From the NCBI GenBank assembly GCA_013115145.1, contig JAAPAO010000335.1, positions 1-38,395 of the forward strand: a stretch of DNA of 38,395 nt. Reading direction: 5' to 3'. A program made the translations under genes and the position numbers. The DNA is from Perkinsus chesapeaki ATCC PRA-425. Its lineage: Eukaryota > Protista > Perkinsozoa. This document shows positions 4,701 to 26,100 of this stretch, piece after piece. The notes under the pieces were generated by a model that searched no databases, was not told the origin of the DNA, and saw only the letters and a list, made by a program, of their open reading frames with translations. The number at the start of each line of letters is the position of its first letter. The stretch's first letter is position 1.

Positions 4701-4950
4701 TATTATCCTCCGACACTTCTGTTTTATATTACCCATCGATGGCAGCTTTCCTCTGCTCACTCCACGCCCAGGTGACATGTCCTAAATAAAACCATCTACC
4801 CTATCATCAACCACACCACGCACCTGTGCAGCACTTCCCAGGCCAGACTCCGAGCCAGCAGTAGTAGATTGACCTGATTTGACCAAATCCGTCACCCACA
4901 GTGTTGAAGTATCCTCTCACCCTGGCCCAAACCTTTCTTACCAAAACGCC

Positions 4951-4984
<34 letters not shown>

Positions 4985-6450
4985 AAGAAGAAGAGGAAGA
5001 TACACCCGTCAGTGGCGACAAAAGCGTAGGAATATACCGAGATTCTTTGAGGTTTTTCTTCTCCGTCATGCATATAGGAGAGCGATCTATCCCAGAACTT
5101 TCACTACCCATCACAGAGGTGTGCTGGATCAAAAACATCCCTGGCGCAAAGATATATCAGATATTTCGCTCTTCGAATGTCATCCTAGACCAACCATCTA
5201 GTGCAGTTCTACTTCCGTCAGGATTTCCCTTCTATCCCCATGCTTCTCAGCATTAGCCTTACCTCTGCCTTCCCCCACAGAAATGCCTCCTCCTTTCCGT
5301 GCTGCCTCAGCGTCATCCAGCAGTGCTGTTGTCGCCTGACCTCTGGTGGCTTCACTTTGATTAGCATTCATATCCTCCGCAACCACCGGCAGGCATGTAT
5401 ACCTCACAAAAAAGAACACCAGCGTCCATCAATAATTTCGCGGCGCGTGACTTTTCCTCTACCATAGCACGGCCAAGAACTCTGTAAGAGTGTTCTCGAA
5501 GACCTGTTCGTCTATACAAATCGGTCTGGAAATTGTGTGTGCACCCCGCGCCGAACGCTGGGACGAATCCTCCGAGTCCTCCATATCCTGATCACCAGCA
5601 TCCCACCCGACCGCCGCCGCCGCCGCCGCCCCACCTCCTCGGCATTGGGCTCCTCGCCTCCACTGTCCTCCCCTCCTATGTCGCTCGTTCCGTCCTGCCG
5701 ACGTAATATCCGAGAATCATGCTCCTTCACAGCATCCATCTGCAACGAGATAATAAATCTACCACGGTGGGCACCTTCTTACAACGCTCTGCATTCGATC
5801 AACCAATAGGTAATGTATCTTCTCTAGATCCCCTTGGTAGCACAGTTCCATCAGCTCGTCCACAGTATTGTTATCATCAAACACTTGCAGACATATATTC
5901 TGAAGATCCTGATGCATATACCTTCCCCGCCGCTGCAGCACACGCCTCAGTATCTCGTTTCCTGTCCGTCCTGCCATGAACACTAGCACCCTTGGGACGA
6001 GCCTTGGAACCTACGGGCAGACGGAGACCCTCGCCGTCGACTCGGAAATATGGACAGATTCCTGCTCTCTGTGTGGCGGCCAGATCGAGATCCCTGACAG
6101 AGCCTTGAAAGCCCATACCGCAATAACAACAACAACGTCTACCGAGCCCCCTCGACCGCTGCCACTGAGTCGGGTCCCAGTGGACATGCGACGTGATGAG
6201 GTCTGCGTGGCCGATATTCCATCGTCATCTGCAACAGCAAGAAGAAGACGACAGATCTATCATTACAATACAAGCGCTTGAGAGCCCCACCATGCGCGCA
6301 GCCGGTCTCCTGAACTGCCGGGCTCGATGATCTTCTTAAACTTGGTGGTGTGAGCCGTCGCATCGATTGATCAGACAGTGTAGGTATGATGGGTAAAGGC
6401 AGGTGAGGTGGCCCTCGCTGGAACGATGGCCTTGGTACTGCTCCCGCCAT
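1720..6450 (-). CDS. Multi-exon membrane-bound class III adenylyl cyclase with a single catalytic domain
   Basis: Motifs [56 protein letters not shown]|MESHG and [14 protein letters not shown] are in exons 1946-3101. Hydrophobic exons lie at about 3000-4500. Low-complexity upstream exons appear spliceable back to an ATG at 6450, but that 5' linkage is less certain. Confidence 0.85.
4951..4998. repeat. (GTA)11 microsatellite followed by a GAA run; encodes poly-Ser/poly-Thr in a probable cyclase exon
   Basis: Direct reading of 4951-4983 plus gaagaagaagaggaaga. The minus frame reads [17 protein letters not shown]. Confidence 0.9.
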
Positions 6451-6550
6451 ATGGGATTATAAACTTACAAAAATAATACCGCTATAAGTCTCAAGCAAAC
6501 ACCACTTCGTCCTTTCATTAAGCGCTAGTAATGCTGATGGTAATATGTTG

Positions 6551-9500
6551 CTAGAACAATAGCCACTTTTTCCGTTGCTGTTTTTTATTCATATCTCTCG
6601 CCATCCTCAACATATCTTCCGATTGCTGTGACATCTGAGCCGACTTCTCTTGAATGTCCGACAGCTTCTCCCTATTGCTCGCTATCTGCGCCCTAGCTCG
6701 ACTCAGCATCTCCTGAGTCTCTTGTGACGATGACGTCCCTGTTGCTGCAGCAGCTGCTGCTGATGCCTTCCCTCGGACCCCTTCATTGCCACTCCCCCTC
6801 CTTTCGGCCTTCACATCCATATCCTGTTTCTCCCCTCCGCCTCCTCGCAGCTTGTCTCGGATATGCCCGAAAGTGCTGGCGGCTCCAGCGACGGCCCTGT
6901 TAGCCGCCCGTTGACTGGCCTCTATGACAGCTCCCTGTCGTATCTGCTCCTGCATCCGTTGGCTCACCTCCAAAGTAGCCTCCGTCACTTCCATCCTGGA
7001 GACATACGCCTTCTGGGCCAAAACCACCGTCGACTCGTCAACTGAATCCTCGGACTTATTAAATTCCGAAATGACCGCGCGCCTCATTTCAGCGTAAAAC
7101 CGGATGACTAACCCTCTCGACGTGATCCATACCAAACTCGGTCCACTGTCCTCCCCTCCAGCAGCCTCACTTCTCCCCACCAGCACGCCATCCCTCAATC
7201 TTATCACTTCAACCGACCCTTCCTCATTCGCCACAGCAACACAGCGGCCATCTTCCCCTCCCATGTCCACCAGCTGCGCCGCAACAACGTCACTCCCCTC
7301 GCACGCCAGTACCGTCCATCTCGGGGTCTCAACAAGCCCAAAGCTCCGAACTGTCACCCCTGGAAACTGACCCACCACAACATCGCTCGCAGCCAGGTCC
7401 ACCGTAGGCGCCCCGCTCGAAATGAGCAGTCGGTAATCGACCTGGAATCTTCGGCCCGACACCGTGGTCACAATGACGAAGTTACCGACAACCTGTAGGG
7501 CATGGATACCCTCATCACAGCTGAAAACTTGGGATTTCGTGGCGAGTGAAATAACAGAGCCATCAGAGTAACCGGCAAATATAGTCCCAGCAGCAGCCAC
7601 GTCCGCGCACACTGCCGTCACAGCAGTATCCGTAGTTAAAGTGAAAAGCGATGCAATTTTCCTATCAGAAAATACGTAGCATCTCAACCCTCTGTTCCCC
7701 CCACACAGGAGGACACCTTCCCATCTGCCCAGGTCCCAGGTTCGAATCCCAGCAGCTCCATCTTTCGATAACTTCCCCAACAGTTTTTCCGTTCCCTGTC
7801 CTTTCGGCAGTTCGCAAAGAGCATGCCGGCCCGCAGGCTTCCATGAACTCATCGACGGTGCTCTAGTAAACCCAGACAGATTCATCTCTCTGTTATTAGC
7901 TTCCACCAAGGCCACCATTTTCTCGCGCGCCCCATCGAAATGGGCGTCCACAATCTCAGAGTCGGTTGTCTGCGGGGATTCTTCCCCCTCATCACAGTGG
8001 ACAGTCTTCACCACACCTGACGAAACTGCTGATAAGAACGCTAAACACTAACTTTCAACGTCTGAACTTATTAATTGCTCACCGAATCAAAGCCTCAACA
8101 ATTGAGCGGAAATTAGCGAATACTTTTCCCCAAGGAACCTCCCTCAGTTGGTAAGTGAGCTACGTGAACAAATGCACACCCACTCGAGTAGTGCGGCGAG
8201 ACCATGGCTTGGTGTAGAGTTCTCAGATCATATATGTGAAGTAGAATAATTATGAATAACATGAATAATATAAAACTACTTATTGAATGTTATTGTAGCG
8301 TCTATGGTGCAATGACTCCCCAGAGGGATGCCGCTCAGTCGAGTCCCTAGGGAAGGCTAGGCCCTGACCGACTGGAACTATTAAGTGGGAGCATATGAGT
8401 GCAGCAACGTGTAAGACAGTCTAACTGGGCCATATTGGCGTCTGACTTTAAACTACACAGCAACAACTTCCCAGTGGCCAACAGTTTAGCCAGAGTGGAT
8501 GATCAATACTACTGTAGACTTTGTTATACAAAAACTCAAGTGGCCAAGGAACTAAGTGATTGACCTTTTCCCCAACCAACAGCAGCTTCAACTGCAAGAA
8601 GCACGTCAAGCCCGATCCAGATATCTTTATTATGCCATCAGCAACATTATAACACCGAAACACCCCCAGTTTGCTGCCTACCGGTGACAGCATCGAACAT
8701 GAACTCTCCCAAGCATGTTGCCAGTCTTATCATACCATCCCTCCCAAATATGATATCAAACACATTCTCAGCTTCCCGAGGTAAGTCGATCGATGTCCCA
8801 TTTGGCATGTCCATCCACAACTGAGCAGCAGCCACCGGCAATCACCAACTCACTTTCCCATCTTCCCTTACATCATTCTCCGAACTAACCCACACCGTGA
8901 TCCAGGCGTTCGGTTGGAACTCGCAGCCAGCTATGCAAGTGGACCCATGGGCGGCTGTATTAATGCCAGCTTTCTGATCCGCTAGCCAACCTCGACTTGC
9001 TGGGGAGTAGAAGCGAACCGGGGACCTTATAAGATAACAGGGCTACCAGGACAGTATCACTTACGCCGCGGCGTCTCAGAAATGCAGTATACTGCTATAG
9101 TTAATAATATTAACATTTTAATAATGCATTTTGAACTGAATAATATTAAACTCCCCGTTGTGCATTTTCAACTGTGCTAGATGGTGTAGATTAACTTAAG
9201 ATTCACTGCATCGTTTTCAATTGTTCCATAATACAGAGGGAATGAAATTGTCGAAAATCTTCAAGGTAAGCTGCGTAGATTCTGACATCTAACAGTGCTA
9301 AAAGGGCATATAGCGAATGTGAACATCATCATCATCACCATCACAGGGATGATGATAATGTTCACATTTACTATATGCGGTCCAGGCTAGAGTGAGAAGC
9401 GTGAAGAGTGATGTCATCATTCTCCACGCTCCTCATATTAGCTCTTAGATATCCTCGCCGAAGCGTCGTATCAGATTGAAAAAGATAAAGTGGAATCTTC

Positions 9501-12214
9501 CCGCGGGTAAAAGCCACGAAAAGACTAACCGAGCATGCTGAATAGTATGCTCGCATGGGCCGTCTTGGAGCAGATGGCCTTGAATTGGCCTAGAATCTCA
9601 TGTGGGGGAGATCGGCCATTTGAAGTTTCCTCGCCAATGCTAAGCGCAAGCGTATATTACACACCGATCAATACTATTCAATGGTTGAAGTGTAAATGAC
9701 ATACTCACTTTTCATTGCCTATCATCCATACCGATCCATCCTTATTAGTGGCCAATACCGTAACCATACTAGCTTTGGCATCCCCCCCACCAGAATCCAA
9801 TACTAATGATGCCAAGAATGGTGCACTACCATCTGTGGCATCAATGACCTAAGTAGCAATAATGTAGCGGAAGAATTCCACTTGTTAGCGGTGGCACTGC
9901 TAGTGCAGTGAGGTGTTAGTGCCGCCCAAACATCTCAGAATGCTATTAAGGCAACACGGCAATTAATGCTGTTCGTTAGTAGTGTACTACTGATAAACCA
10001 AAGGATCTGTTATACTATAATTTTACCAAATATCGCATACCATTCCACATCCAGTATGATGATACTGTATCATATATAGTGTTATATTATTAGATAAAGT
10101 CCATACTATTATATCCACATCGCACTATCCTATTTACCCCACATGAGCAACAGTGTCAAAACGAAAACGCTTCTATAGGGAAAGCTTCAGGGCGCACATC
10201 GTACTCATTTCACCCATCTCCGCGACTCACCTTAGTGTTCCCCGTTGACGTCCCTACCAGGCACATACCTGTCTGGGCGATCGGGCACAGCTTGGTGACA
10301 GACGAGGTTTGAGAGATCTCTGAAAATCATCATAGTGCATAGCAGCGTTAAAGGCTGACTCACCTATTGTGACGGGCCCGGTCGCATTCGGTGAATCTTT
10401 GGCTTGCACCAAGTCCCATACAAAAACAACCTAATTAGCGGAGAGAGCGGTATGACAGACTGACCTTCGCCTTAGATACATTAAAGTGATTTTATCGATT
10501 ATTCTATTTCTTAATTTTGCAAAACTCGCATTTTTCGCAAGGTGTCAAGAGGTTCACGGTGAAAGTTGTAAAGTGATTAGTATTAGCGACTAGTTCAATG
10601 TTGACATCATCCAAATCGATCAACTCTTATAAGACCTATACAGGGACCAATACACCCATCACATATTAGGATCGAGCCATCAACCACTTTATTGCGCCAT
10701 ATACCATTGAGTGCTCTCAACAGTCGTATCAACTATACCAACAACCATTAGGTAAAATCCATGCGTTATATTTCCACTCTAGGCTTACATTCGCCGCGGA
10801 TGCAACAACGACCCCTCTCCCGCGTAGTGCAACAACTTCCTGGATCTCGCCCGGCGGTGATGGCCCTGGCAATACCTAAGGGAACAATGTCGAGCTTGGA
10901 AATGTATAATAATATTCAATTTATAATAAATCGCTATTATTTTGCAACTGCTACCTCCATATTGTTGAATAAAACTAGGCAAGTCGAAACCATTGTCAGT
11001 CTTCTAACTCCAACTCACCATCCCGATGTTCAACATGACTTGCGCTCGAGTATCAGATTGATTGAGGTGCAGAATTTGGTTCATTGTTTGGATTTTCTGC
11101 CAGCGGCATGCTCACGACACCACGTGCCCGTATTCCAGAGTCGATAGGGCCAGGAAGACCCAAGTAGAAGTAGAGTGACAGCTACCGTGTTTAATCAAAG
11201 TGGGATAGGATTCACTCTCTTGCGCACTACGAAGATTTCAAAGATACTAGCATCTTCGAAATCTTTGTAGTGCGTATACAGTTCGCTGGACCACACGGGC
11301 CGCACTATAAATGATTCCTTTAAGATTATCTTACCACATCCAGCTCATTTGTGTAAACCTTGAGCCCCCCTCCTCGAAGGGGGATGGCAATAATGCCAAG
11401 ATCGCCATCAACAGCAAAACAAGAATACCTGACCTAACCGTCAAGCCGTCACTGCGCCACGTAATTCGTCTACATCCAGTCGCTGCATATGCCCACATAA
11501 GCAGTTATCTTCTCTTCCTTTAAGTCAGCGTTACTGACACCTCTAGCTGCCACTGGCACGGCGGCAGGGGGAACAGGATGCGGGGAGCAACTAGGCTCCG
11601 ATTCCTCATTATCTTCCTCGAGAGTATCATCCGAGGATGATGACAACGATGAGGAGGAGCTTTCGGTCCGGCTACGCTGCGGTGGATCCCTGCAAAGGGA
11701 AGTAATGGGGATGCTGTCTGGGAAATAATTACAATATCGAGGATGTCGGTGCCTCGGATTGAACCTGTGCTGACGGATTGGATGACCTGATAAGAGGAAG
11801 TGAAACTTCTATCAGCAATTTCACGTGTTATAGCAAGGACAACCATGTTGGTCCGTAGCAACAAGTCACAAATAATATATGGACTACATTTCTAAGCTTT
11901 AACATATTCATATATTCTCAAGATATAATAATATTATAATACCTATACACACAAGACTCTCCCAAATACCACATTTCCGTTTGGAAGTACAATATACAAT
12001 ATAGTAGTAAAAAACGGTTAACATTATACCAAAATCTATTCACACTTTTATATACGATAATCTCACAAGCTGCCTACCTTCTGAACAATGAATCTATACC
12101 AGCGGTTTCGACATGCATAGGGACTGACAACTGGCTGCTGCTTGGGTTACCACTACCCCCACTAGTCTTATCGGCTTGCTCTTTGGCTCTCCGAAAATCA
12201 GATATAAAATCCAT
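6551..12214 (-). CDS. Tomosyn/Lgl(Sro7)-like WD40 protein with C-terminal R-SNARE-like coiled coil, multi-exon
   Basis: The C-terminus RARAQIASNREKLSDIQEKSAQMSQQSEDMLRMAR resembles the tomosyn VAMP-like motif, with no TM anchor. Upstream exons read as WD40 strands: YSCFAVDGDLGIIAIPLRGGGLKVY (about 11340-11430), VVFVWDLVQ (about 10400), SSVTKLCPIAQTGMCLVGTSTGNTK (about 10240-10320), LATNKDGSVWMIG (about 9720). The start MDFISDFRRAKEQ at 12214 is inferred. Confidence 0.7.
7731..7758 (+). pseudogene. tRNA-like 3' half (Ala-like acceptor), antisense to the tomosyn-like gene
   Basis: aggtc ccagg ttcgaat cccag cagctcc a reads as variable loop, T-arm with B-box, and acceptor 3' strand with U70 and A73. 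The T-stem is imperfect and there is no 5' half. Confidence 0.55.
9306..9378. repeat. 73-nt near-perfect inverted repeat (31-bp arms)
   Basis: 9306-9336 versus the reverse complement of 9348-9378: 28/31 identical, 11-nt loop. Confidence 0.9.
11221..11276. repeat. 56-nt near-perfect inverted repeat (23-bp core arms)
   Basis: cgcactacgaagatttcaaagat (11223-11245) versus the reverse complement of 11252-11274, cgcactacaaagatttcgaagat: 21/23 identical, loop actagc. Confidence 0.9.
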
Positions 12215-12655
12215 AAACAATCAAACTATAGCAACGAAGGTCCCATAAGCATCAACACACCGACGGGATACGGAAGGACCTTCCAATAATGACCAAACCG
12301 TCTAAAAAGTATTATTTCGTAACTGACGGAGGAGCCCCGTAGTAGTGTCATTTCCCTACCTGATGCTAGCGAACAAGTAATTGTGGTTGATTAAGAGGGC
12401 TCATATTCGTAACATCTGATGATCATTCGATGGCACTCACTATACAGTATAACCCACAAAAACATATGGAATTATAAAGGTATCAAATTCATTAACATGT
12501 TCCATGCCGACGATAGTTATCAAGATCGAAGTTGAGATTCTACTTTTCTAGGCTAATTAATCCGTCACCGCGCCACAAAATAGTTCATCTTCCAACTATT
12601 AACAATAACGACTTGCATTGATAGAAACGTTGCACAGGAGTAATGGTAAAGTATA

Positions 12656-14279
12656 TCATCGTTCGATCTTCTCGTGTATAAGCTGTCTTGTTAAAGGTAA
12701 TGCCGTTTGCAATGTCCTGTCAGTTGGTAAGCCTACTGCATGCCATCGGATGTATCCAAGACGATCTATCAGTAAAACTGAAAACAATGCAGCAAATCGA
12801 AATGACAAAGGGCCATATATAATAACCCCTACCGCAGAAATACAGTATAATGATAAATTTGATTGTAAGCAGATTTGTAGATAACATTTAATTTTCTCCA
12901 CATAAGCCCTTTACCAAATGGGCATCAGGCGCCCTTCATTCTCCTGGAGATGAAACACAGTACGGAATCGCCAAAACAAACTTCGTTTTCAATACAGAAA
13001 CGCTTTGCGAAATTTTCCCGGGATTATACTTCCTCGTCAAGATGCGTAGGTGAGCAAACGCGTGAGCTCCAAAAAACACTAACTCACCGACGGGCAAGGC
13101 AGGATTGTACAGATGCAATTTAGGCACTAAATCTCTTCGCCATTTACCACGATAAACGTAGGTATTCATCAGTTCATCTCGACCTTCAACCTAAGATACG
13201 CCAAGATACGCTAAATATAGCTCGCCAGAGGCTGTACCTGATCCCGCAAGGTGAGCTTAGTCAAAGGGTGGGTTCGTCGATTTATCCAGCCTTCATGGAA
13301 ATGGACCTGAGTCGACGTCACGCGCCACTAAATTGCGGAGTAAGATATTGGAAGCAACCACATCTTCCACAAGATCTGAGGAATTATTCGTAGAGCAAGG
13401 AATGCCGTCGGCACGCAATCAACCTCCAAAAGTATCTTTTGGCCGTTTCACCTGCAACATTTGAGTATCATCTCTATCACCAACAATAGGCTTCAATGCT
13501 TCCTTCCACGTCCTCACTCCCGAATATAACGACGATAATGGTTGACCTGCTGACAGGAAAGACAGGCATACCGCAAACCGAGTAAGCAGCCGACTAAGAT
13601 GGTGGAGCTAACAACCTCCCCCAGTGTAACCGATTATACAACTTAAAATTGTCAAGTGCCAATACAGTAAACAATGAAGCCAATGAGTAGCACACAAATT
13701 CTGTCCCGCTATACACCACCTTGAACTGTGTCCTTACCCGAGAATATAAGCATGATGGTAACCTTGCCTTGTAACTTATTAAATAATGTACACGGCTTGG
13801 CAGAGAATCTCCAAGTCTGACTTTGAGGTTGATAAATCTGATAGTAAGAAATAAAAATAATAACTGTTGAAAGCTATCTATCGAACAAAAGGAATTGGAA
13901 ATGTCCCTATACATGATGCTCAGAGCCAATGCTCGATTGGGGCGCTTAGGGAAGAAGGAGGCTTATCAAATTCAACGTTTTCTGAATTGATCCATATTTC
14001 GGCACGCGCTCGAAAACCCGAAACCCGAAAACCCGGTAGAGTCCTAAACCTACCGGATCAACGTAGAGGTCCAGTGGCCACCTATACGCTACCGACCGCG
14101 GTATGAGAACATTAGTCCAATTATATGCTGCTGTTTGACCTTTATGATATGGCTCTATTACCAGGTTGCACGAGTATCTTAAAAGATACTTTATAGGTTG
14201 ATTCAGTGTCATTTGCTTATTACTTAGGTGACATATCGATCGATGTGCCATATCCAATTGAGTTCCTCAATGCATCCAT
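12656..14279 (-). CDS. ATP10: ATP10-like mitochondrial F1Fo ATP synthase assembly factor, multi-exon
   Basis: The spliced C-terminus DELMNTYVYRGKWRRDLVPKLHLYNPALPV|VLLIDRLGYIRWHAVGLPTDRTLQTALPLTRQL fits the ATP10 pattern (Y-x-x-L-[VI]-D-x-x-G-x-I-R-W-x-x-x-G-x-[AP]-T). Upstream SDLEILCQ..VTIMLIFSG|QPLSSLYSGVRTWKEAL fits its thioredoxin-like start. The 5' end is uncertain. Confidence 0.7.
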
Positions 14280-14488
14280 TGCTAATCCGAATGGCCCTAC
14301 CTGAATAAATACACATAATACTACATTAACAAAAACGATATGACGTTTTCCCCTCTATTAAAGTTAAAATGGCTCTGCTCTATTCATGATGACTGAGTTA
14401 CTGCTAAAGTGAGATGGAGTAATGTTTCTACTAGATTATAAACTAATAATTACTTTATCTAATTCAAAGGTGCTTCCAATACATACAT

Positions 14489-15779
14489 TTAGTGAGCGTA
14501 GCTGCCGGTACATTCAGTACCCGATTCACCAGCAGAGCGCCATTTATCCAGAGCTGCTTGGTAAGTGACGAAATCAACCATTTGCTAGCATTTACGCAGA
14601 GGTTACGAACAATAATGGTAATGTCAATACAATCCTACTCATCAGCAAAAAGGATATTCAAGCAGCTTCAAGCTCGCTCTCTCCCCGATGTCCATCAGCT
14701 ATTATGTCTTCCGTTTCCTACTACCATAGGTTTCGTTGCATCCCCCTCGGCCAGCACTGCTGCATCTCTACTCCCTCCTTTATACAAGGAATCCATTACT
14801 GCTGGGCCACCCGATATATTAGACCACATCCTTTGCACCTGATCACATAGCAAGATAGAGGGCAGGTGAGTATCTTGGCGACCCGACCCGGGGAATGGAA
14901 GAGAATTGCCGATGACGATCATACGCTGTTATCAAGTTTCTGTTGGCAATCATTCACATTATATTCATCAACGTCTATACCGCCTTATCCTATATTCCTT
15001 GTATAATACATTATTTACTAAACATATCTATCCATATTATTACCATAGGTGCTATTGTGGCGGTTTTGAGGCCAGTCTCAATAGATTCACCAACCTTTAT
15101 GCCTTCCACTCCTACAGGTTGCCCAGCAGATACTACCGAGTCGACAGTGTCATGCCCTTCTAATGGAGCAGCCTTGCTTGATCTACTCACATCAGAGAGA
15201 GTATCTAAGGTCCAACCTCGCATTTTATCATGGTGGAAGATACATATATACTCAAATTTGCTTCCAGTGCAATTTGAGTTGAATGAGGATATCACAAAAC
15301 CATACAGACATCAAATCCCGCCTTTTTCCCCACGAGCTTTCCCAACTCAAGGGAAAGAATTGAACTAAGCAGGATGGGGATGCGATCGAAGACACTAACA
15401 CCATCAAGAATGCCCTCGGCGAATGGTGGGTCTGACGAGGTCGACTAGGATAGAGGGCATACAATATGACTTGATAGCTAAGGATGATTTTAACCATACT
15501 GTATTATATGCTGAACCACGTCATCTTCAACGACCATTGGTAAGCTCTAATAACGTGATTACCATCAGTCTGAACTAGGAAGGTAGGTTTACTCATAACA
15601 CGGCAATATGACTGGTATAGGTAGCTGGATACGATGATTTAGAAGAAATACGGTATAATTATTATAAATACGTCCTCCCTAATAGTACCATATTTCCCTC
15701 TAATAACAGCAGTATTAATGCTTCTAACAAGTCGATTGACTACACTCCCTGCCGGCCGAACACTCCGTGGCGCTAGCAT
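14489..15779 (-). CDS. Hypothetical multi-exon protein with an Arg-rich, acid-poor N-terminus (possible mitochondrial presequence)
   Basis: ATG at 15779 gives MLAPRSVRPAGSVVNRLVRSINTAVIRGKYG. Internal exon-like segments: SDPPFAEGILDGVSVFDRIPILL, GQPVGVEGIKVGESIETG, VQRMWSNISGGPAVMDSLYKGG. Last exon QMVDFVTYQAALDKWRSAG...AH*. No family recognised. Confidence 0.5.
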
Positions 15780-16028
15780 ATAAAACTAGAAGGAAAATAT
15801 TGTTACATAATTGACAAACGGAAACCGTCTAATCCATAGGCATCCGCGTTACGATGAATTTAATGATACATTGTTCATCTTAGTGCAACCCTAAGATACT
15901 TTTCCACAAGATAACACCCTCCATCAACCCAATAATAGTCCGATTTATAATTATATTATTATAATATATACTTACAACATTAATACTTATTATATTATTA
16001 CAATATTTCGATACCTTTGTAATTATTA

Positions 16029-19000
16029 ATGATATTCCCCTATACCCAGCCCACTCTCTTTCAAAGTTCCTACTTGCCGGAGACACGCATCTCAAGGCGT
16101 GCGCGTATTTTCGTGGCGCGCAGGAGTACTTGTTGTGATCAAACAAGTTAGCCTCGTTTTCTTCTCCTTTTCTGTTATTATGGACATTGCTTTAGCAGTA
16201 GCTGCTCGAACTGACTGTGAGCTATTGGATGATATTAATAATATAAAGGTCAATGCTGATGATACTGAGAATACTAGAAGAATAATGGAGGAAAATGCTA
16301 GGCTGGATCGGTAATGTCAAAGGGGGGATTCGAACCTGGGACCTTAGGGTTTTGAAGAACGCGATTCAACAGATAGATTAAGCCGGAGGAGACACCACTA
16401 AATTTGGTTTACAGAGTTAGCTATGTCTGCTCATAGTCCATCGGAAAAGACCAAGTCTGCTGCATATTTTCTATAAACGCAAGTCGACTGTAGAAGTATT
16501 ATAGTCAAAATGAACCATATTTAAGTGGGATATGAAGATAAGACGCCAAGACAATCATTCTCGGGCCACATCCTTCGTCGTTGAAAGTTTATTATGAAAT
16601 GGAATATCCAATGGTGATCACCCGCCTCTCCCTCCATTAAAGCACTGCTAATCGATCGGTGGCTTCGTAATAGACCCACTCTTGCATTGATGAATCTCAC
16701 TGACGTTATAAGAGTAAAATACGTCACATCTGCATCAGGGTGGATAACGACTATCTCATCACTGTACTGTCCGTCTTCGCTTTCGCACTGCCGGGGCCTG
16801 CTCCTTCTGGGGAGTCGTGACCGATGCGTTACGTGGAAATATCTCGATTTCGAGCTTGTAGAAGATTTGCATAATAAAAGAAAACTAGTTCTTTCCTCAC
16901 CATTGCATTCTAATGTTCAAAGATGCTCTCCATTCCGCATATGGTGTGGAAGGCAAGTAGATATACAATAGTATCTAGCAACTCAGTGAAGAGTTCTAAA
17001 AGGGCCCTAAACACTCTTGCGGTCCATCTGTACATCTCCGTAGTCATTGAATCCTCCTATGGCGCAGATCCCTTAGACGCGGGTGTCCATATCTCCACAT
17101 TTCCCCACTTCTGGTGGTCTAGGTATCCCGGGTCCAGACATTATTCAGTCTTAAGTAGATAGGGAGTGACACTGATGATGCTTCACATCGATAAATGATA
17201 TTAAATACTCTTCTAGTGGGAAGGAATTTTAGTTCCATCCGAAAGACCTATAAAATGGAGCATCTCTCTCCGGTTCAGTTACGAGACACTTCAAATTGAA
17301 GCAGTCACTTCAAATAGGAAAAATGCAGCAGTTGAAATGAAATGGGCGGAGCTGGCTAGAGTGGAGGTCCCACAGGTCAGGCACACGGGGAAAACGCCCT
17401 ACCTGGGGTTCGAACCCGCGGCCTGTTTAGGAATTAGCGAAGGAACTGGAAGCACAAACAGTGTCATGTCAATCTATTATTGATTCTAAGGTAAAGTAGC
17501 CGTCACGCGCCACGAAATTAGGAATGACTTCGCCTCAGGACCGTCGTATTAGGGAGTTTTTCATCGAATTGGAAGGCAAAAATGACTCATTTGTGAAGGC
17601 AATGAAGAAGGCTGATGAGGATGTAATAACTAGGAGAATAAAATGCCCTCGGTGGGGTTCGAACCTGGGTCGACAGGTGCGGAAAATGACAGCGTTAATG
17701 ACTACTAACGTGCGAACGCAACGTGATGTTCATGCGAAACAGCTGAAGGCTGTTGAGGAACATTTGGAGAAGGAACGAGCTGAGTTGCTGGGGAAACAAA
17801 AGAAGGAGTTAGATACGTTGTTTGAGAAAAGGAGACAGGTAGTATCTTGGCTTGACGCGTGCAAGATACGATTAAGGTTGATTTGAACTCAGATGGAAGA
17901 GAGCGAATTTATAGAACAACGACAGGAAAGAGAGAAGCAGTTTCAGCAGAAGAATGAGGAGCTCCGATACAGAGTATGTGTAACCGGGGCTCTCTCGACT
18001 GGACTATTCACGTGCTATGCAATGGAGATTATTCCACCACCTTGAATGACAGGAATTATCTTCTCGATCAGCGGGACTTCCTTTTCTCTATTTTGCAATT
18101 GTAAATCGTCATGACTTTTGAGGCTCAACAATTGTAACGTTTGTATGCTTTGGAGCAGCAGCAGCAGCCTGCTTAGTCGAGCATCGTCGTCTCTAACAGT
18201 GGCAGACTATCTGTTGCATGCTGCCTCTTCAGCTGCGCACTAAAATTCATCACTGGCAAACCGACAAGAAAGATTGTTAAAACGGTAGAGGCGTAGGAGG
18301 ATCGTGCCAGAATTGTGCGATCTTTTCATCAACACTCCTTCCCTCGCCGTAAGATGCGTTGAGTCCATGAAATCTTACCATTTCATCTTTTTCCTCCAAC
18401 ATATTTTCTATCACTCTTTCTGTTAAGCAAATATGTATTCTTTAATAGCAATGATGATGTAGGATAGTAGATGTGGTACCGTTTACAGGGTATATGTATC
18501 CTGTATATGGAACATATATACGTCAGGGTGGATGGACCCAACTCTAGTCCACTCGAGCACGATTTCGTCATCGCTTGAATCCCTTCCTCACAAGGGGGAT
18601 GTGATGGAATGAATACGAATTCCTGATAGTACGGGTCTGTGATCAAATGGGTGAATTTAGGACCTGGATGAATTTGGCAAAGTCAAGATGTCGCTGGAAA
18701 GATCAATACAAGAATTACAGCAACATTTAGAGAGGACAAAAGCGACTTATCAGCTTAATAAGGAAAAGTTAGACTACAACTTACAAGTAAGCATATAGCA
18801 ACTTGAAATCTTGCGCGCTCTTACGTTTCCTCAACGCCGCAACTGTCGAAAACTACATCCAGGGTCTCTAGTATCTACTAATAACGCTAGTGGGAGATTT
18901 CTACCGGCAGCTTAGCGAAACTGCTCGCCGTTCGTAGTAGCGTTTCAGAAATGCGTCATTTTGGAGGGAGGCGTCTTCATACATACTCATTGCACTTTTT

Positions 19001-21385
19001 ACTGTGGAGGAATGTGGTCTGGTTATGGTCTTAAATCCGCAATAGCGGTTTCAGAAGTCATTGGGAAATATCACAGGTTCTAGCGGAGCGAAACAAAGAG
19101 CATAGCGTGATTGAATCAAGCTATAAGACAAAGCTGAACAAGTTGAGAGAGTTGAAGCAAAACCTTACACAGCGGTATGGTGCATTTATCGGTCATTTGA
19201 GAGAAGTACGGTATGGCAGGTTTGTCAAACTCGAAACGAATTCCCGAAAGGAGAACACTAATTTGACTGAAGAGTTTAGTAGATTGATGCAACAATACCG
19301 ACATGTGCTGGAAAAAAATAAAAAATTTGAAGAGCAAGATCAGAAAAAATTCAGCGATATTTGGGCCAATAACGAAACCGAAGTTAGAAGTCTCGTTGCG
19401 AAAGTGCTAGACGGAGATAAAGTCATTCATGAGCAAGTAAATCGATCACCTGGGCGCGCGCTTTTTACATCATCGTAGTTACTGGGGCTGACATGGAGCC
19501 CTCCTACATTGGACCAAATACAGCAAGAATTGGAGATAATGAGTGAGGCTGGTACGGTGACAGGGAAGTCATCAACGGCATTGGTGAGCAGTGAAAGTGG
19601 ACATACTACTGGATCAGCTGGAGGAAGATATTCGGTAAGGGATAACGATGTGGTTAGGACTACTGAACTAGGACTAACACTGAAAAGTTGAGCCTAGTCT
19701 AACTCAACTAGGCAGCCCCTCCTGAATTCGGACGGTCTTTAATGGATAAACTGCGCCGTCAACTGCAACTCATCACAATATACTTAGTTATTCGTGCGCG
19801 TATAGGATTTTGAATCATTATTTTACCACCATTGTTTATATTCAACAATACCAGTGATAATTAATAGTAGACTGCTATTACAATGTGTAGACTATTTCAC
19901 AGTCTGAGCTGCCTATATAGACTTTTCATCCATTTAAAACCAATTGTTTCACAAGAATAACAATAATAAGAAGCGGACAGAAACCACATCAATGCGTCTA
20001 ACCGTCGAATATCCCTACTTGTGACGGCCCTTTCATGCCCCTAGTTGAGATTGCCGCCCTTCATAGTCATAGATTGTTGCCATTTTGTAGGGTAGTAAAG
20101 TTAAAGCTGTTATGGACTGGATAAGACAGGAAGCCTCATTCCTGTTGGATATGGGGGTTAGGCAGCAGTGTAGAGGTCTACCAGAGGAGCATAAGGCAGT
20201 TGTGGAGGTGAGAGAGTATATAATGAGTATTCTACAATATTAAACCCGAAACCGTATGATAGGGAAAATTTTGGGAAAATTTTCAGAATTGCTGGTCGAC
20301 TTTCCTCCCTATATGACTGGATGGGGAAGCCGTATACCTCGGCTGGGGAAGGCAGTGGAGAGATCTGCTAAGAATGTTTATGCCATATAATTTGCATTAT
20401 AATAATATCGGGGGAACTTTTATCAGACTTAAGGAGCGAAAGAGGGGATGTATGTGGATGTTAATTATTGCTCTATTCTCTTACCGAACATACCCATTGA
20501 ATCGGCGAATTCGAGAAAGAGACACTGCGACGGTATATGAATACCTGACTACTATTTACCGTATGCTCACTCAATTGATACTACTCGTGCACTTCTAGAT
20601 AATCCCCATAGGCAAGTTGTACGCAATACAGGCTCTTTCCCTTCGTCCATGCGAGCGGCCCATTGGACCCAATGATCTAGTCACAAGCTACATGTATCAG
20701 ATTGACGCCATCCTCCGCTCGATCGGGTGCGAGAATCAGCGAGACGTCGATCTCCTCGTATCGCAATTCTTCCGAGGACAAGATGAAGATGATGAAACTT
20801 GGCTGGTGGAGTCTGACGACGTACTCAAGCTCATCACGGAATTTATAGTGGAAAAGGAAAATCTCAAAATTGCTGACGTCGCTCCGGACAAGTAAGCCAT
20901 GGTGGTCGAGTTTAGCTCTTCTGGGATGTCTCAGGAAAAAGAGGGGTCGAAAGGGCGCCGATAAATTGTCCGATGCGGAAAAAGTAGCACGCAGACGCAA
21001 GGAGGAGCAGAAGTGCGCCGATGCCTGTGGCGGTTGGAAGGTGTGCTCTTTGTAGATTCTGGGAGCGAATCGGGCACGCTTTGCCGGACATGAGCGTTCG
21101 GCTGCATGTAGCCTTGGAGACCTGCCTCAATCGGCAGTACAGGCTGCTGCAGAGGAGGGCTATGACAGTTGAAAACTGCATAAACTTGCAAAAGGAGAAT
21201 ACGGAGGTGGGTTGCGCTGTCGTGGCACTTCTGTGGATGACCGTGCTCCCTTTCAGTTGAAGCAGCTCCTGGATAGTTATCTTGGCAGCAAGGTGAACCA
21301 TGAGCTGCAGGTGCCACCGATACATGTTATACGAGTTGTTAATGCACCTATGACCTCGGCATCAACGAGAGCGGTCGGGAAATGA
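16029..21385 (+). CDS. DRC1: Dynein regulatory complex subunit 1 (DRC1/CCDC164), multi-exon
   Basis: Exons give ETRISRRARI, NIKVNADDTENTRRIMEE, RKNAAVEMKWAEL, IIDSK|DRRIREF, ERAELLGKQKKELDTLFEKRRQ, KATYQLNKEKLDYNLQVLAERN and C-terminal YLGSKVNHELQVPP. All match the NYD-SP28/DRC1 pattern in the right order. The start ATG is inferred. Confidence 0.9.
16315..16390 (-). pseudogene. Decayed tRNA-like sequence at the start of a large DRC1 intron
   Basis: The minus strand reads ...ttcttcaaaaccctaaggtcccaggttcgaatcccccctttgaca: B-box, AGGTC variable loop, CAA at standard positions 34-36, Leu-like TGACA end. Acceptor and anticodon stems do not pair. Confidence 0.5.
17391..17424 (-). pseudogene. tRNA-like 3' half plus TTTT inside 55-nt DRC1 intron 17376-17430
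   Basis: Minus strand: aggcc gcggg ttcgaac cccag gtagggc g tttt. Confidence 0.55.
17502..17520 (+). promoter_or_regulatory. Representative copy of the recurrent motif GTCACGCGCCACGAAATTA
   Basis: Other copies: 5433-5451 (-, 18/19), 13317-13335 (+, 17/19), 22705-22723 (+, 17/19). Weaker ones at 11448-11466, 12564-12582, 16106-16120 (-), 24592-24606. Function unknown. Confidence 0.55.
17639..17673 (-). pseudogene. tRNA-like 3' half plus TTTT inside 54-nt DRC1 intron 17623-17676
   Basis: Minus strand: cgac ccagg ttcgaac cccac cgagggc a tttt. It aligns with the 17391-17424 copy over aaaa-x-gccct-xxx-tggggttcgaacc. Confidence 0.55.
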
Positions 21386-21472
21386 GAATCTTCACAGTGC
21401 GCACATGACGGAGATATCTTGTCGTTATCTGAATTTATGGCTGTTGAGTTGAGTTAGAATAATCTTGTCGAC

Positions 21473-21490
21473 AGCTAGAGGTGTCAGAAA
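21473..21490 (+). promoter_or_regulatory. Recurrent motif AGCTAGAGGTGTCAGAAA abutting the bromodomain gene ATG
   Basis: An exact 18-mer is repeated at 28301-28318. A 16-nt match (cagctagaggtgtcag) lies on the minus strand at 11534-11549. Confidence 0.5.
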
Positions 21491-22682
21491 ATGCCAACGT
21501 CATCATCACCACGTAGTCACCATCACCACAGGCATACCGACGTTCCCTTTAACGCGGAGGAGGCGAAATCGATTCTGACCAAGGCGGGCGAGCATGGCTC
21601 TGCCGGGCCCTTCCTCCAGCCAGTTGATTGGGAGAATGTTCCTGGCTTGCACGACTACCCTCTTGTAGTTAAGAAGCCTATGGATTTAGGTGGGTGCTGG
21701 AATTCACCAAGCCGCCCTATTTGGGGATTCAGGCACAATCGGCGAGAAGATCGACGAAGACGGCGATGATGCCTATGAGGACTTCGCTGCGTTTGAGGAT
21801 GACTTGAATCTCATCTGGGATAACTGTCATCTCTTCAATCAGCCGGGCTCGTATATGTAGCAGTTCAATCTGGCTCCAATCGCAAGGTTAATGCAGTTGT
21901 CAGATATAAGATGGCAACGAAGATGCGAACGTATTGCCAGAGTCTTTGCAGCGCAGCTGTTAACGGTGGTGGACAGCACAAGAGAAAACGAAAAACGTAG
22001 GGAAGTACATATTTTGCCAATCGCAAAGGATCGGATGGACTCAGAGGTCTGTTATCTCAAATCTAATCGTCTCTTAAGGAAATGTTTCGTCCTCGCCACA
22101 AGGACTCATCAGTGGCTAACGGCACCAGACACATCTTAAGTGCACCCCATACGTAGGCTGCTGGAAATCTCGATGCAGACTTGTGTCTTAGGAGTCACTT
22201 GTCTGAAGGAAAGCACTCTAGAAGCCGACGATCCAGTACGGCAGAAAGCTCTAATCGGTCGGAAGTTAAGGTTGAGAAGCCCACCGCTCCGGTGGAAGTG
22301 GTTACATTGCCTCCTATGGACAAGGCTGCAGCAGCCGAACTGTAGGTTAACGATTTCATGGCCAATTCATTGACGGACTCAGGCACGCGGCGAAGATCCG
22401 ACTGGGATGGAGATTGCACAGTTCCATGACGCCCAAAGAGCTTGCGTTAGTTGTGGAGTTCATGCGGTACCGAAAAACAGGTGCGCTTAAACCAGTAGGA
22501 TACATTCCAGGTGAAGTGCTTGCATCGGTTATGCTCTTTCTCAGCTTGGCGCCCCGGATGACGAGACCGGGTCGGAGTCCTTCCTCTTGGACATTGATCA
22601 CCTTGCTGCTCTCGATTATGAATGCTTCACTGACGTGTCACAATTCGTAGATTTGATAATACGATATAAAGAAGGATCGTGA
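21491..22682 (+). CDS. Bromodomain protein with C-terminal ET-like domain (BET/GTE-like), multi-exon
   Basis: GPFLQPVDWENVPGLHDYPLVVKKPMDLG|TIGEKI...FEDDLNLIWDNCHLFNQPGS is a bromodomain with the conserved Asn. KIRLGWRLHSSMTPKELALVVEFMR and ESFLLDIDHL resemble an ET domain. Confidence 0.8.
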
Positions 22683-23157
22683 GCATGCGAGACTTGAGTT
22701 CTACGTCACGCGCCAAGAAAATAAAGATACACCCAAGCTTACGGATTTGAGAAACAGGAAACGAAGCGTATGTAGTTTTCCGAATCTCACGATAATTCGA
22801 TCCAGATGTGGTATTGGGAATGTCACACAAGACACGCACTGCCGTGGCATTTTTGCCAGACGTAGGGCTTTCGACTTTACCCCTTATGAGTAAGGACTGT
22901 GACACCGTTTTTCGAGGGTATATCACAGAGCGTTGCCCGAACCCTTCGGCCGAGCCCTACACACAGCAAGTCCTCCCCAATCTATGGGACACAGTCGATC
23001 AACATCAACAACAATACTCATCGAATGTCGGCGTGTGCACTACTGTATGTAGACTTTGAGCAGGACCCGTACACATGCCACAAGGAAGTCTGTGGAAGTC
23101 TATACTGTGAAACACAAGACAGATCATATCACGGCAAAGTCACTTGGAGCATGAACG

Positions 23158-26100
23158 TCACTTCTTTTTCTTGGCACCACCCTTATCCCCACCAGAGGCT
23201 TCCATCGCCTTCGTCTAAAGCGTATCATACTAAACTCACCCTCTTAAGCTGCTCACCTCTTCTTGCATTTGCAGATTCCGTGCCTTATCGCCGGAGGCCT
23301 CGTAATCGAACTCCTGGAACTTCTTGTACTCTTCCTTCCAAGAGCATTCACATCGGGACAAAGGCTCGATAAATTCATGCAACGTCTGAAATTGAAATGC
23401 CGCCCTCCTGGCATGGCCGGAAGTGCCCACCAGAGGCCTGTGCTTCAGCCTGGCGATTCTGCGGCTGGTCAATACCTATTTCGAGAATGCATATCGAAAT
23501 GAAGGCTTCACGAATTCTGCGCACTCGTTCCACAGTCTGTCGTATAGCTCTGGTGGTATACCCTTCACTCAAATGGGCCAGGCTTGTAAGATTGAGATCA
23601 CTACTGGTTGCGATGTGCGGTGGGACCTGCTATCCGCAATGTTATCTCGTCTGCGTCGCTCCGCTCACTTACCCCTTTACTCTCCATAAAACTTCTCCAT
23701 AGTATAACTCTCGTGCCGAAGTCTGGAGTAGGCACCCAGACCTTCTCATCGAAAGCCGCCAGCAGTTCCTTTGTATCCACCCCCTCACCAGAAGGATTTG
23801 ATGTGCCTGGAGAAGCAGCACCTTGACCAGCGTTCGGAGGCCATCGGCTTGCATCCTATGAACAGTATCCTATCCTGGTCGGTGCTTTCAGGCCCGGTTT
23901 TCAGCTGCTTTATCGCCGCAATGAAATCTTTCTTTATTCTGCTCGGTGGGTCGCCTGAGTTTAATTGACTCCTCACTTTCCCTTATCAGCTTTCCTTACT
24001 TGCCGGTTCTTCCCCTGCCGGAGCTCCTTCGGTCGCAGGAGCTGCTTTGCCCTTTTTCTTGCCTTTCTTCACAGCTTGGAATACCTACCGATACCATCAA
24101 CACTTAACTTCGTAAACCTCGCAACATATCCTTAAGAATGCCTCCGAGTGAGACTTCGAAAGCTAAGCTGCAAACAACCATTCCGAGAGTGAAAGTGAGG
24201 TTCGGAAGATTTGGTATTAGTCCTATAGAACTGGTTACAACGGCATCAGGCAAATGTACGAATACACTGAACACACTAACACCTTTATAATACGAGTCTC
24301 ACCTGGTCAATATCATCACAGTAAATAGCAGCTGGTGCGTTATCCTGGGCTGCAAGGAAGGCCTTGTAGATGAGAAGAGCCGCACCGATCTTTGGCTGCA
24401 ACGCGGAGACCATGGTGAACACTATCTAGTATGTGTCTGTTTTGTACTGTCCCTACTTGTGTGTATTTCCCTTCTATAATTTTTGGTGATATGTCTATGA
24501 ACGTCGCGCCAACTTCAGTAGCTATGATTCGAGCCAGAAGGGACTTCCCACACCCTTTAGGGCCAAACCTGAAAGATGCTCACTGAACTCCCGCGCGCCA
24601 CAGAAACACCGGTTCTGGAAAATCATGCATCTCAGCCGTCAGCACAAATCGGCGCTCGAAGGTAGCACTTACAGTAGGAGAGATTTCGCTGTTAAGCTGC
24701 TGCACCGTTGGCGTATCGATGTCGATGCCAATGGCAGGCACACATGCTCCACGATCATGGACTTTATCTAAACCAATGCTCCACCGACTGAGGAAGGTGT
24801 TATCATCCGACCATCTGGGCACTTGGTGGGGGACACATCGGCTCGCTGACTCTCTGCAGCGCCCCGAGGAATGCAAACTCTCCCAGAAAGTCTTTCAAGT
24901 GTGCCGGTTTAATGCATTTAATGATGCCCTGAGAACAGGAGCTTCGAGATTCCTCGCGTAACAGAATCTAGTTACATCCTGGACCAGCTCAGGGAGACAG
25001 TCTTCCCTGTGTGCTACCATACCCACCGCAGCACACCACTTCTTCGCTTTGCTTTTCTTCTCCTTCTTTCCTAAACAGAACAGATGAAAACTCACCCGGC
25101 TTGTCACGAGTGTGTTGCGCACCTTTGCCTTTCTTCCCTTTTTTCTCTTTCTTCTTCTTAGCCTTCTCGTACATATTCTAAACTCCACTTCATTAAATCA
25201 ACTGTCACTCCGCCGCCGCACCTTCAAATTGGCCAGCTCCCCTCTCATAAGTTCATCAACATTATCCTGTATCTCTTTCTCCACCAGTGGGAACACCTTC
25301 GACCGAGTGAGCTGAATTAGACCCAACATCGGCAAGGACTTCTCATCAGTTTTATTTTCACATTCACGTCGTGACGTTGGTGCATATTGCTAGATTCATC
25401 TCTCGTCTCCCAGCTTGAACTATACTCCTTCATTAGCTCTACGAGCTTCTGGACCACCTGCCAAAGATAACAGGCCTACAGCCTGCCCAGTATGATCGTT
25501 GCTGTGAGCTCACCTCGGAGGTGCCGATGTCGTGGGTCTTTACAGGCTCCGGCTCGGCTGCTCCTTTATCACCCTTCTTGTTGCCACCCTAACGGAGCCG
25601 CAAGATTGTTCTTCCAGAAAATTGGGTCATAAACTATCATCACTGCACGTGTGCGTGGGATCTCTTTCATGTACACCGAGATACTTTCATATATATGTAT
25701 ATATAGTGTATACTGTTCTCGTTCTACTAACCGAAATCTTTGCCCGCCCCTACCGTTATTCTATAGATGTTGCGTGTTGTACTCGTGTGGGAACGGTAAG
25801 TTCGATTATCTACTACTACTGCTAGCATTCGGGGAGATGACTCGGGTAAGCTGTCGATGAACTAGGCTTAATAACGAAGTCACTTGGTTAGGGGAGCTGT
25901 GCTATTCCACGTCATTCTTCACAGCTGATATTCATCTTCAAAATATAACACGTTACCTTCTTTCCGGCGGCATCCTTCTTATCATTCTTCCCCTTCTTCC
26001 CACCACCAGCCGCTGGAGCCTCCTCCGCCGCCTAGAACAAGTCTGTAGCACTAAACCTGTTATTAACATATACCTCTGCCGGTTGGTCGAATCTTGTGTA

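Follow-up and report, generated by a model that had tools for sequence, protein, structure and literature searches.

What a short, sharply defined DNA motif is doing in the introns of unrelated genes is the question raised by a stretch of 38,395 nucleotides from Perkinsus chesapeaki ATCC PRA-425 (contig JAAPAO010000335.1, positions 1 to 38,395), referred to here as the window. Perkinsus is a parasite of shellfish, and to our knowledge almost nothing is known about the control of transcription in perkinsids and their dinoflagellate relatives. A first-pass annotation of the window, made from the letters alone, had noticed the motif and proposed two origins for it, namely a site scattered over introns and bound by a DNA-binding or chromatin factor, or the remnant of a tiny intron-generating element. 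Comparison within the genome and with a sister species establishes that the motif is real, abundant, ancient and selectively maintained. The reading preferred here, to which a probability of roughly 0.6 is given on sequence grounds, is that it is most likely a bipartite double-stranded DNA element of 18-20 bp on which a sequence-specific DNA-binding protein docks.

Abundance and borders of the motif

The exact 10-mer GTCACGCGCC is present four times in the window, at 5442-5451 (-), 13317 (+), 17502 (+) and 22705 (+), and a motif scan confirmed these positions as they had first been recorded. Dinucleotide shuffling gives an expectation of 0.03 copies, in line with the earlier rough estimate of fewer than 0.1, and none of 100 shuffles reached four. 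In the order given above, these strong copies differ from the 19-mer consensus of the first-pass annotation at 1, 2, 0 and 2 positions. The genome-wide frequency, which the annotation had suggested counting, was determined in the 41.7-Mb assembly, with each count set against a reversed-pattern control, and it lies far above that control. GTCACGCGCC occurs 683 times in comparison with 48, whereas the 18-mer GTCACGCGCCACGAAATT, at three mismatches or fewer, occurs 1196 times in comparison with 14, and 67 of these 1196 copies are exact. Across the different forms of the motif, the enrichment relative to the reversed controls ranges from 14- to 300-fold.

The similarity between copies ends abruptly. 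When the four strong copies are aligned with 50-nt flanks, identity is confined to the motif, and in a sample of 98 non-redundant copies drawn from 90 loci the information content is restricted to 18-19 positions, with flat flanks on either side. An all-against-all BLAST found almost no extended similarity among the 90 loci. As neither flanks nor extended matches are shared, these copies stand singly in unique DNA instead of belonging to a longer repeat; fragments of one long repeat, the outcome that the annotation had named as fatal to its own proposal, would not have such unrelated surroundings. Tandem arrays whose units carry the motif were observed at three of the loci, L010 1501-1750 (G000 C17), L031 (C191) and L090 (C617), and comprise 5 x 55 nt, at least 6 x 69 nt and 3 x 19 nt. 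The motif string was not found in the literature searched, nor did searches for work on the introns or motifs of Perkinsus bring up any mention of it.

Conservation at orthologous sites in Perkinsus olseni

A 16.8-kb contig of Perkinsus olseni (L091) is collinear with window positions 2767-21988 and carries, in the same order, genes for a cyclase, a tomosyn-like protein, a 330-aa ATP10-like protein and DRC1; a 487-aa open frame of the window shares 63% identity with a P. olseni protein. The comparison was based on exons taken singly, and the P. olseni locus ends short of 22705. Over 36 exon blocks, the two species share 74% amino-acid identity but only 39% identity at four-fold synonymous sites, and neutral sites are thus near saturation. 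Within this syntenic block, seven family members are found in the window and six in P. olseni, and they form five orthologous pairs in which both the variant and the orientation are the same. Three pairs lie in introns, one in a coding exon and one upstream of the DRC1 start. Conservation in a sister species, another check put forward by the annotation, is therefore seen for five of the seven window copies. Neither an exon-sized DRC1 query nor a 315-aa ORF query retrieved usable relatives from which further sister-species loci could be taken.

The clearest case is the 48-nt DRC1 intron at 17491-17538, in which the exact consensus TCACGCGCCACGAAATTA (17502..17519, (+)) stands in sense orientation at position +12. 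All 18 of its 18 bases are identical in P. olseni, again in sense orientation, while the remainder of the intron is unalignable; at the neutral rate, the chance of such a match would be 0.39^18, or about 4e-8 by our own arithmetic. The tomosyn-like gene has an intron of about 45 nt that contains, in antisense orientation, the one-base-longer form GTCACTGCGCCACGTAATT (11448..11466, (+)), and its P. olseni counterpart at L091 10497-10515 is also antisense, has the same T-insertion and shares an exact 15-mer. The third intronic pair belongs to the minus-strand ATP10-like gene, where the canonical copy GTCACGCGCCACTAAATT (13317..13334, (+)) is antisense and is matched by an antisense copy at L091 9049-9066, placed at a different offset in the orthologous 96-nt intron. 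Judged from this comparison, the window intron is probably 13307-13448 (142 nt) rather than 13307-13361 (55 nt), as modelled before.

The remaining two pairs lie outside introns. A coding exon of the tomosyn-like gene contains a copy missed by the first-pass annotation, the G6T variant TTCACTCGCCACGAAATC (7533..7550, (-)), which encodes S-L-A-T-K and has orthologues at L091 12794-12811 and at L092 1641-1658, the latter from a third lineage taken from a Logan assembly. All five codons under the motif are nucleotide-identical in the three species, in comparison with 8 of 37 nearby codons (22%) in which the amino acid is conserved. The conservation of the motif thus exceeds the neutral rate, and it does so at synonymous sites too. 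The degenerate copy CCTGCGCGCCACGAAAAT (16107..16124, (-)) precedes the start codon of DRC1 by about 70 nt; P. olseni has TGCACGCGCCGCGAAATT at the aligned position L091 5430-5447, which is closer to the consensus and likewise about 70 nt before the ATG. In the orthologous non-coding gaps, which total 12.2 kb, the two species share no more than eight exact words of at least 11 bases, and the 18-mer and the 15-mer of the motif are two of the three longest. A motif that stays unchanged at matching sites in such a distant sister species behaves as a working signal.

Three copies are lineage-specific. The first is the canonical GTCACGCGCCGCGAAATT (5434..5451, (-)), in sense orientation at position +12 of the 60-nt cyclase intron 5403-5462, whose downstream exon encodes Guanylate_cyc; P. 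olseni has the orthologous intron but without the motif. The second is the one-base-longer GTCACCGCGCCACAAAAT (12564..12581, (+)), in the spacer from the 3' end of the ATP10-like gene to the start of the tomosyn-like gene, with no equivalent in L091, and the third is a P. olseni copy in a DRC1 intron (L091 4427). One further canonical copy of the window, GTCACGCGCCAAGAAAAT (22705..22722, (+)), is situated in non-coding DNA beyond the last DRC1 block common to both species, that is, in an intron, untranslated region or spacer. The introns of the window were placed by homology with P. olseni. By this measure the intron positions first assigned to the cyclase (5403-5462), DRC1 (17491-17538), tomosyn-like (11448) and, with its boundary revised, ATP10-like copies hold, whereas the copy at 22705 can be assigned only to non-coding DNA.

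These contexts bear on whether the signal resides in RNA or in DNA. Mini-introns could carry a pre-mRNA element, for instance one that enhances splicing or serves a spliceosome-associated protein as a platform, and such an element would be in keeping with the presence of several copies in introns of 45-60 nt, with the start of both sense copies at intron position +12 and, on our own reading, with the GTGAC end of the antisense copies, which could pass as a branch-site-like word 10-25 nt from the acceptor. However, intron copies occur in both orientations, as the annotation had stated, and in about equal numbers: those verified by homology comprise two in sense (5434, 17502) and two in antisense (11448, 13317), and the two strands would give unrelated RNA. 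Conserved copies are also found outside introns, one within a coding exon and one ahead of a start codon, and most introns of the syntenic block are devoid of the motif. This combination of sense and antisense intron copies with a conserved exon copy and a copy before an ATG makes a pre-mRNA signal quite improbable and fits a signal in duplex DNA. An intronic splicing signal in particular is ruled against by the conserved antisense copies at 11448 and 13317, together with the exon and upstream copies.

The same comparison addresses the view that a short cassette, mobile or copied, left the motif behind as a scar without present function, the cassette being introner-like or a filler at DNA breaks. 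Many near-identical copies, local tandem arrays and a second possible cassette family in the genome, the B boxes (33 in 262 kb), all speak for it. Nevertheless, similarity ends at 18-20 nt, neither terminal repeats nor target duplications are visible at the aligned copies, and the copies are older than the P. olseni split and have been under selection while neutral sites became saturated. The lineage-specific intron copies, at 5434 and L091 4427, both lie in introns common to the two species, which implies gain of the motif and not of the intron, and the introner interpretation fails on this point. Amoebophrya genomes carry invasive intronic elements (PMC7789003), and these introners do recall the present case, as in both a myzozoan genome has related sequence in numerous short introns whose host genes are unrelated. 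Introners, however, are alike along the whole intron and reflect recent gain, whereas this motif is limited to 18-20 nt, is ancient and occurs in both orientations in old, shared introns. A remnant of an intron-generating element, as first suggested, would share a whole intron, and only 18-20 nt are ever shared. The functionless scar is largely refuted by conservation and is given very little credence; a copying origin followed by co-option is possible.

Bipartite architecture and candidate readers

The consensus of the 98 copies reads not-G, GTCACGCGCC, then A, C, G/A, A, A, A, T, T, and it has two parts, an invariant half, GCGCCAC(G/A)AAAT, and a looser 5' half, (G/T/C)TCAC. The right half GCGCCACGAAAT has 608 exact genomic copies in comparison with 2 for its control. 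The first-pass annotation had taken the GTCACGCGCC half as the core, a choice that has to be replaced by GCGCCACRAAAT. The composition to the left was assessed by eye in the 7 bases preceding the right half at the first 100 of the 608 sites. In about 30% of them (G/T/C)TCAC directly abuts the right half, which is the form described earlier; in about 23% TCAC is separated from it by one base; and in about 42% the sequence reads ...GCGCGCC, with a looser T(T/G)(A/C)(C/T)(C/T) two bases farther out.

The one-base-longer variant GTCAC[T/C]GCGCCAC (GTCACNGCGCCACRAAAT) has 140 exact genomic copies, its control none, and the extra base N is T or C in all of the 100 copies listed. A recurrent substitution variant is GTCACTCGCC. 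The linker between the half-sites thus varies by 0-2 bases (GC, TC, TGC, CGC, GCGC), which gives the family its length of 18-20 bp including linker variants, and the first 12 bases constitute a partial palindrome (GTCAC + GC + GCCAC). With these forms in hand, two of the four weaker copies listed at first, 11448 and 12564, prove to be good members of the one-base-longer variant; that at 16106 is degenerate, with a two-base gap in the core, and that at 24592, with 7 mismatches, is not convincing. Two conserved half-sites joined by a variable linker would suggest a reader that is dimeric or that contacts DNA through two modules.

Resemblance to cell-cycle sites, of the E2F/DP type or of the MBF/SBF type, had also been proposed. 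APSES factors are fungal, and proteins of the APSES/KilA-N type read MCB and SCB sites. The canonical form of the motif has ACGCGCCA followed by CACGAAA, which, from general knowledge, resembles E2F and SCB sites, and the canonical copy includes the ACGCG of the yeast MCB (ACGCGT) as well as the SCB word CACGAAA itself. Like E2F/DP sites (TTTSSCGC), the motif places a GC-rich CGCGCC core beside an A/T run, is abundant and occurs in either orientation. The likeness is only partial, as the contiguous core TTTSSCGC is found in no variant, AC or ACG standing between the GC core and the A-run, and the motif is twice as long. ACGCG is missing from about two-thirds of the family (first 100 right-half sites), including the longer variants, which are common, and CACAAAA can take the place of CACGAAA.

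A six-frame genome search for E2F_TDP (PF02319) and DP (PF08781) gave no match, although split exons could hide a 65-residue domain, and KilA-N (PF04383) had no match either, whereas an E. coli control genome gave one. The equally short AP2 domain (54 residues) was detected in the same type of search. In Cryptosporidium, itself an alveolate, no upstream motifs are more over-represented than those of E2F, and E2F is absent from the other apicomplexans (PMC4117751). Taken together, an E2F/DP-type or MBF/SBF-type cell-cycle site is a highly improbable explanation.

A protein-bound site in duplex DNA remains the preferred explanation, and tandem AP2 domains offer a candidate for the protein. SPE2, bound by PfSIP2, is a known bipartite site of tandem AP2 domains, and a bipartite site with a flexible linker would suit a two-module reader of this kind. 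The six-frame search returned six AP2 matches, including two genes, on contigs C1080 and C73, with two adjacent AP2 domains, and AP2 domains of P. marinus group with ApiAP2 domains (PMC4117751). We infer that the reader may be one of the tandem-AP2-domain proteins of this genome, and not an E2F/DP or APSES protein. As with ApiAP2 sites, the motif is a lineage-specific alveolate word, double-stranded and used in either orientation, and its two half-sites would parallel two adjacent domains; Perkinsus does have ApiAP2-type domains (PMC4117751), and the present genome has the two tandem genes. In contrast, known ApiAP2 motifs span 5-10 bp and are mostly upstream of genes, whereas this motif spans 18-20 bp and has more than 1000 copies, largely in transcribed regions, and the AP2 link drawn here is a proposed one. 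Such an element would act whatever its orientation and whether it occupies an intron, a coding exon or the spacer before a gene, and clustered copies, which probably act together, would influence transcription or the chromatin state of local genes.

Several points weigh against this interpretation. Binding of the motif by a protein is something that we infer from sequence, as are the regulatory outcome and the identity of the reader, and the motif matches no transcription-factor site that could be confirmed. Local tandem arrays of the motif exist, with units of 55, 69 and 19 nt, and point mutation alone could hardly yield more than 1000 near-identical 18-mers, which were probably seeded by some copying process. 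Moreover, the host genes seen share no single functional theme, hence no coherent regulon emerges from them. The binding site first proposed is nonetheless supported by its freedom of orientation, varied contexts, conservation beyond the neutral rate and homotypic clusters, while the binding step would still be a prediction. A broader idea is that the mini-introns of Perkinsus carry much of the control of genes and chromatin as a small vocabulary of ultra-conserved docking cassettes, the present motif ranking with the most abundant of them, seeded by short-patch copying and kept by selection, with introns persisting partly as their carriers; it is speculative, and we consider it unlikely.

An abundant and sharply defined motif, frozen across species whose neutral sites are near saturation, provides a concrete handle on a poorly known regulatory system, and the 18-mer could be used as bait for its reader. 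P. marinus is transfectable, so reporter tests are possible. If the reader were a tandem-AP2 protein, regulation in the apicomplexan style would be tied to the base of the Myzozoa. The mini-introns of this parasite are not neutral filler, which bears on gene prediction and on studies of intron evolution.

Distribution, clustering and neighbouring elements

The eight independent sites of the syntenic block comprise five in introns, two in spacers or upstream regions and one in an exon, in a sequence of which about half is non-coding. The motif thus favours non-coding DNA, and since most of that DNA in this compact genome consists of mini-introns, these hold the majority of copies. In 85 copies outside tandem arrays, the donor-like word GTAAG was found 8 times upstream of sense copies and 9 times downstream of antisense copies, in comparison with 3.5 expected. 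The concentration in introns reported by the first-pass annotation is correct for this locus, but on the genome scale three home-made classifiers did not separate motif sites from random ones: the longest open frame over each copy did not differ from that at random positions, a codon-usage log-odds profile made no distinction (with low codon bias and a small training set), and a rule-based short-intron model was satisfied by 44% of motif sites and 42% of controls.

Copies are clustered. Of the 99 gaps that separate successive sites among the first 100 right-half matches, 22 are shorter than 5 kb, in comparison with about 6 expected (our own count), and clusters contain 3-9 copies within 2-20 kb. 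The window itself has seven copies at 5-18 kb, across four genes, and one at 18-38 kb. The densest example is a gene for dynein-2 (intraflagellar transport), with nine copies on both strands in 17 kb; a PDB search with the ORF around this cluster gave no match. No copies are present in the 17 kb of cytoplasmic dynein-1, and a third dynein heavy chain gene that was sampled has at most one weak copy. DRC1 has 2-3 copies, and other hosts are the cyclase, tomosyn-like and ATP10-like genes, a chitin synthase, an ion channel and a C2HC zinc-finger gene. A flagellar regulon was considered, given the copy-rich dynein-2 and DRC1 genes, but finds no clear support in the genes sampled, as another dynein heavy chain has no more than one weak copy and some hosts are clearly non-flagellar.

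This distribution could also be expected from an architectural or chromosome-maintenance site, such as an insulator, a cohesin-loading site, a replication-origin element or a heterochromatin barrier, comparable to the 'extra' B-box sites of TFIIIC. Its density of about one site per 20-35 kb, with regional clusters spanning neighbouring genes on both strands, and the uneven share of copies between 5-18 kb and 18-38 kb of the window are in agreement with such a role, as are its use in either orientation and the lack of a functional theme among the host genes. B boxes are also kept in this genome at the frequency given above. The TFIIIC sites are likewise short, sharply bounded, conserved words in introns and spacers, in either orientation. 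They differ, however, in sequence; no Rfam family overlaps the copies, and the distance from copies to B boxes is not fixed. Nine copies in one 17-kb gene are, in addition, denser than origins or boundaries usually need. An architectural role is therefore regarded as possible, though on balance not likely; if it were true, the motif would be the first boundary-type element for perkinsids and their dinoflagellate relatives.

An association with RNA genes was rejected in three forms. A structural-RNA snippet is contradicted by the lack of any Rfam match overlapping a copy, and ARAGORN found no tRNA in the 90 loci or in the window. For an snRNA proximal sequence element (PSE) or a composite Pol III promoter, no RNA genes stand beside copies on small contigs, and the spacing to B boxes, which occur within 150 nt of 3 copies in comparison with 1.5 expected, is variable. 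Copies showed no fixed spacing to the GCGGAGCGAAGC family either. At one locus, L046 (G000 C288:17829-19338), a GTCACGCGCC copy has GCTTCGCTCCGC, the GCGGAGCGAAGC family in reverse complement, some 33 nt upstream, and different motif families can thus share one non-coding stretch.

Other elements were observed in the window. Two adjacent hairpin-forming stretches at 9309-9444 (+) give sub-threshold matches to several unrelated miRNA precursor models and are probably merely an inverted repeat. At 22079-22135 (-) there is a full-length match to the type III hammerhead ribozyme (RF00008), with 37.1 bits, below the gathering threshold of 48.5, and an E-value of about 1e-6. This candidate has an intact GUC site, an equally intact CUGAUGAG and CGAAAC core, and three short stems; a counterpart was not found in the corresponding P. 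olseni stretch (L091 1-900).

A second DRC1 intron, at 17623-17676 (+), is 54 nt long and contains the B-box-like GGGGTTCGAACCTGGG in sense orientation; its P. olseni version (L091 ~4420-4590) measures about 170 nt and has an antisense motif copy near the 3' end. Finally, the 16-base word TTTCTGACACCTCTAG, at about 21475-21490 on the reverse strand, overlaps a weak snoR1-like Rfam match (21469-21513, (-)). It is exactly preserved at L091 1101-1116, in the orthologous non-coding gap, and apart from the motif it is the one long stretch of non-coding conservation in the 19-kb block.

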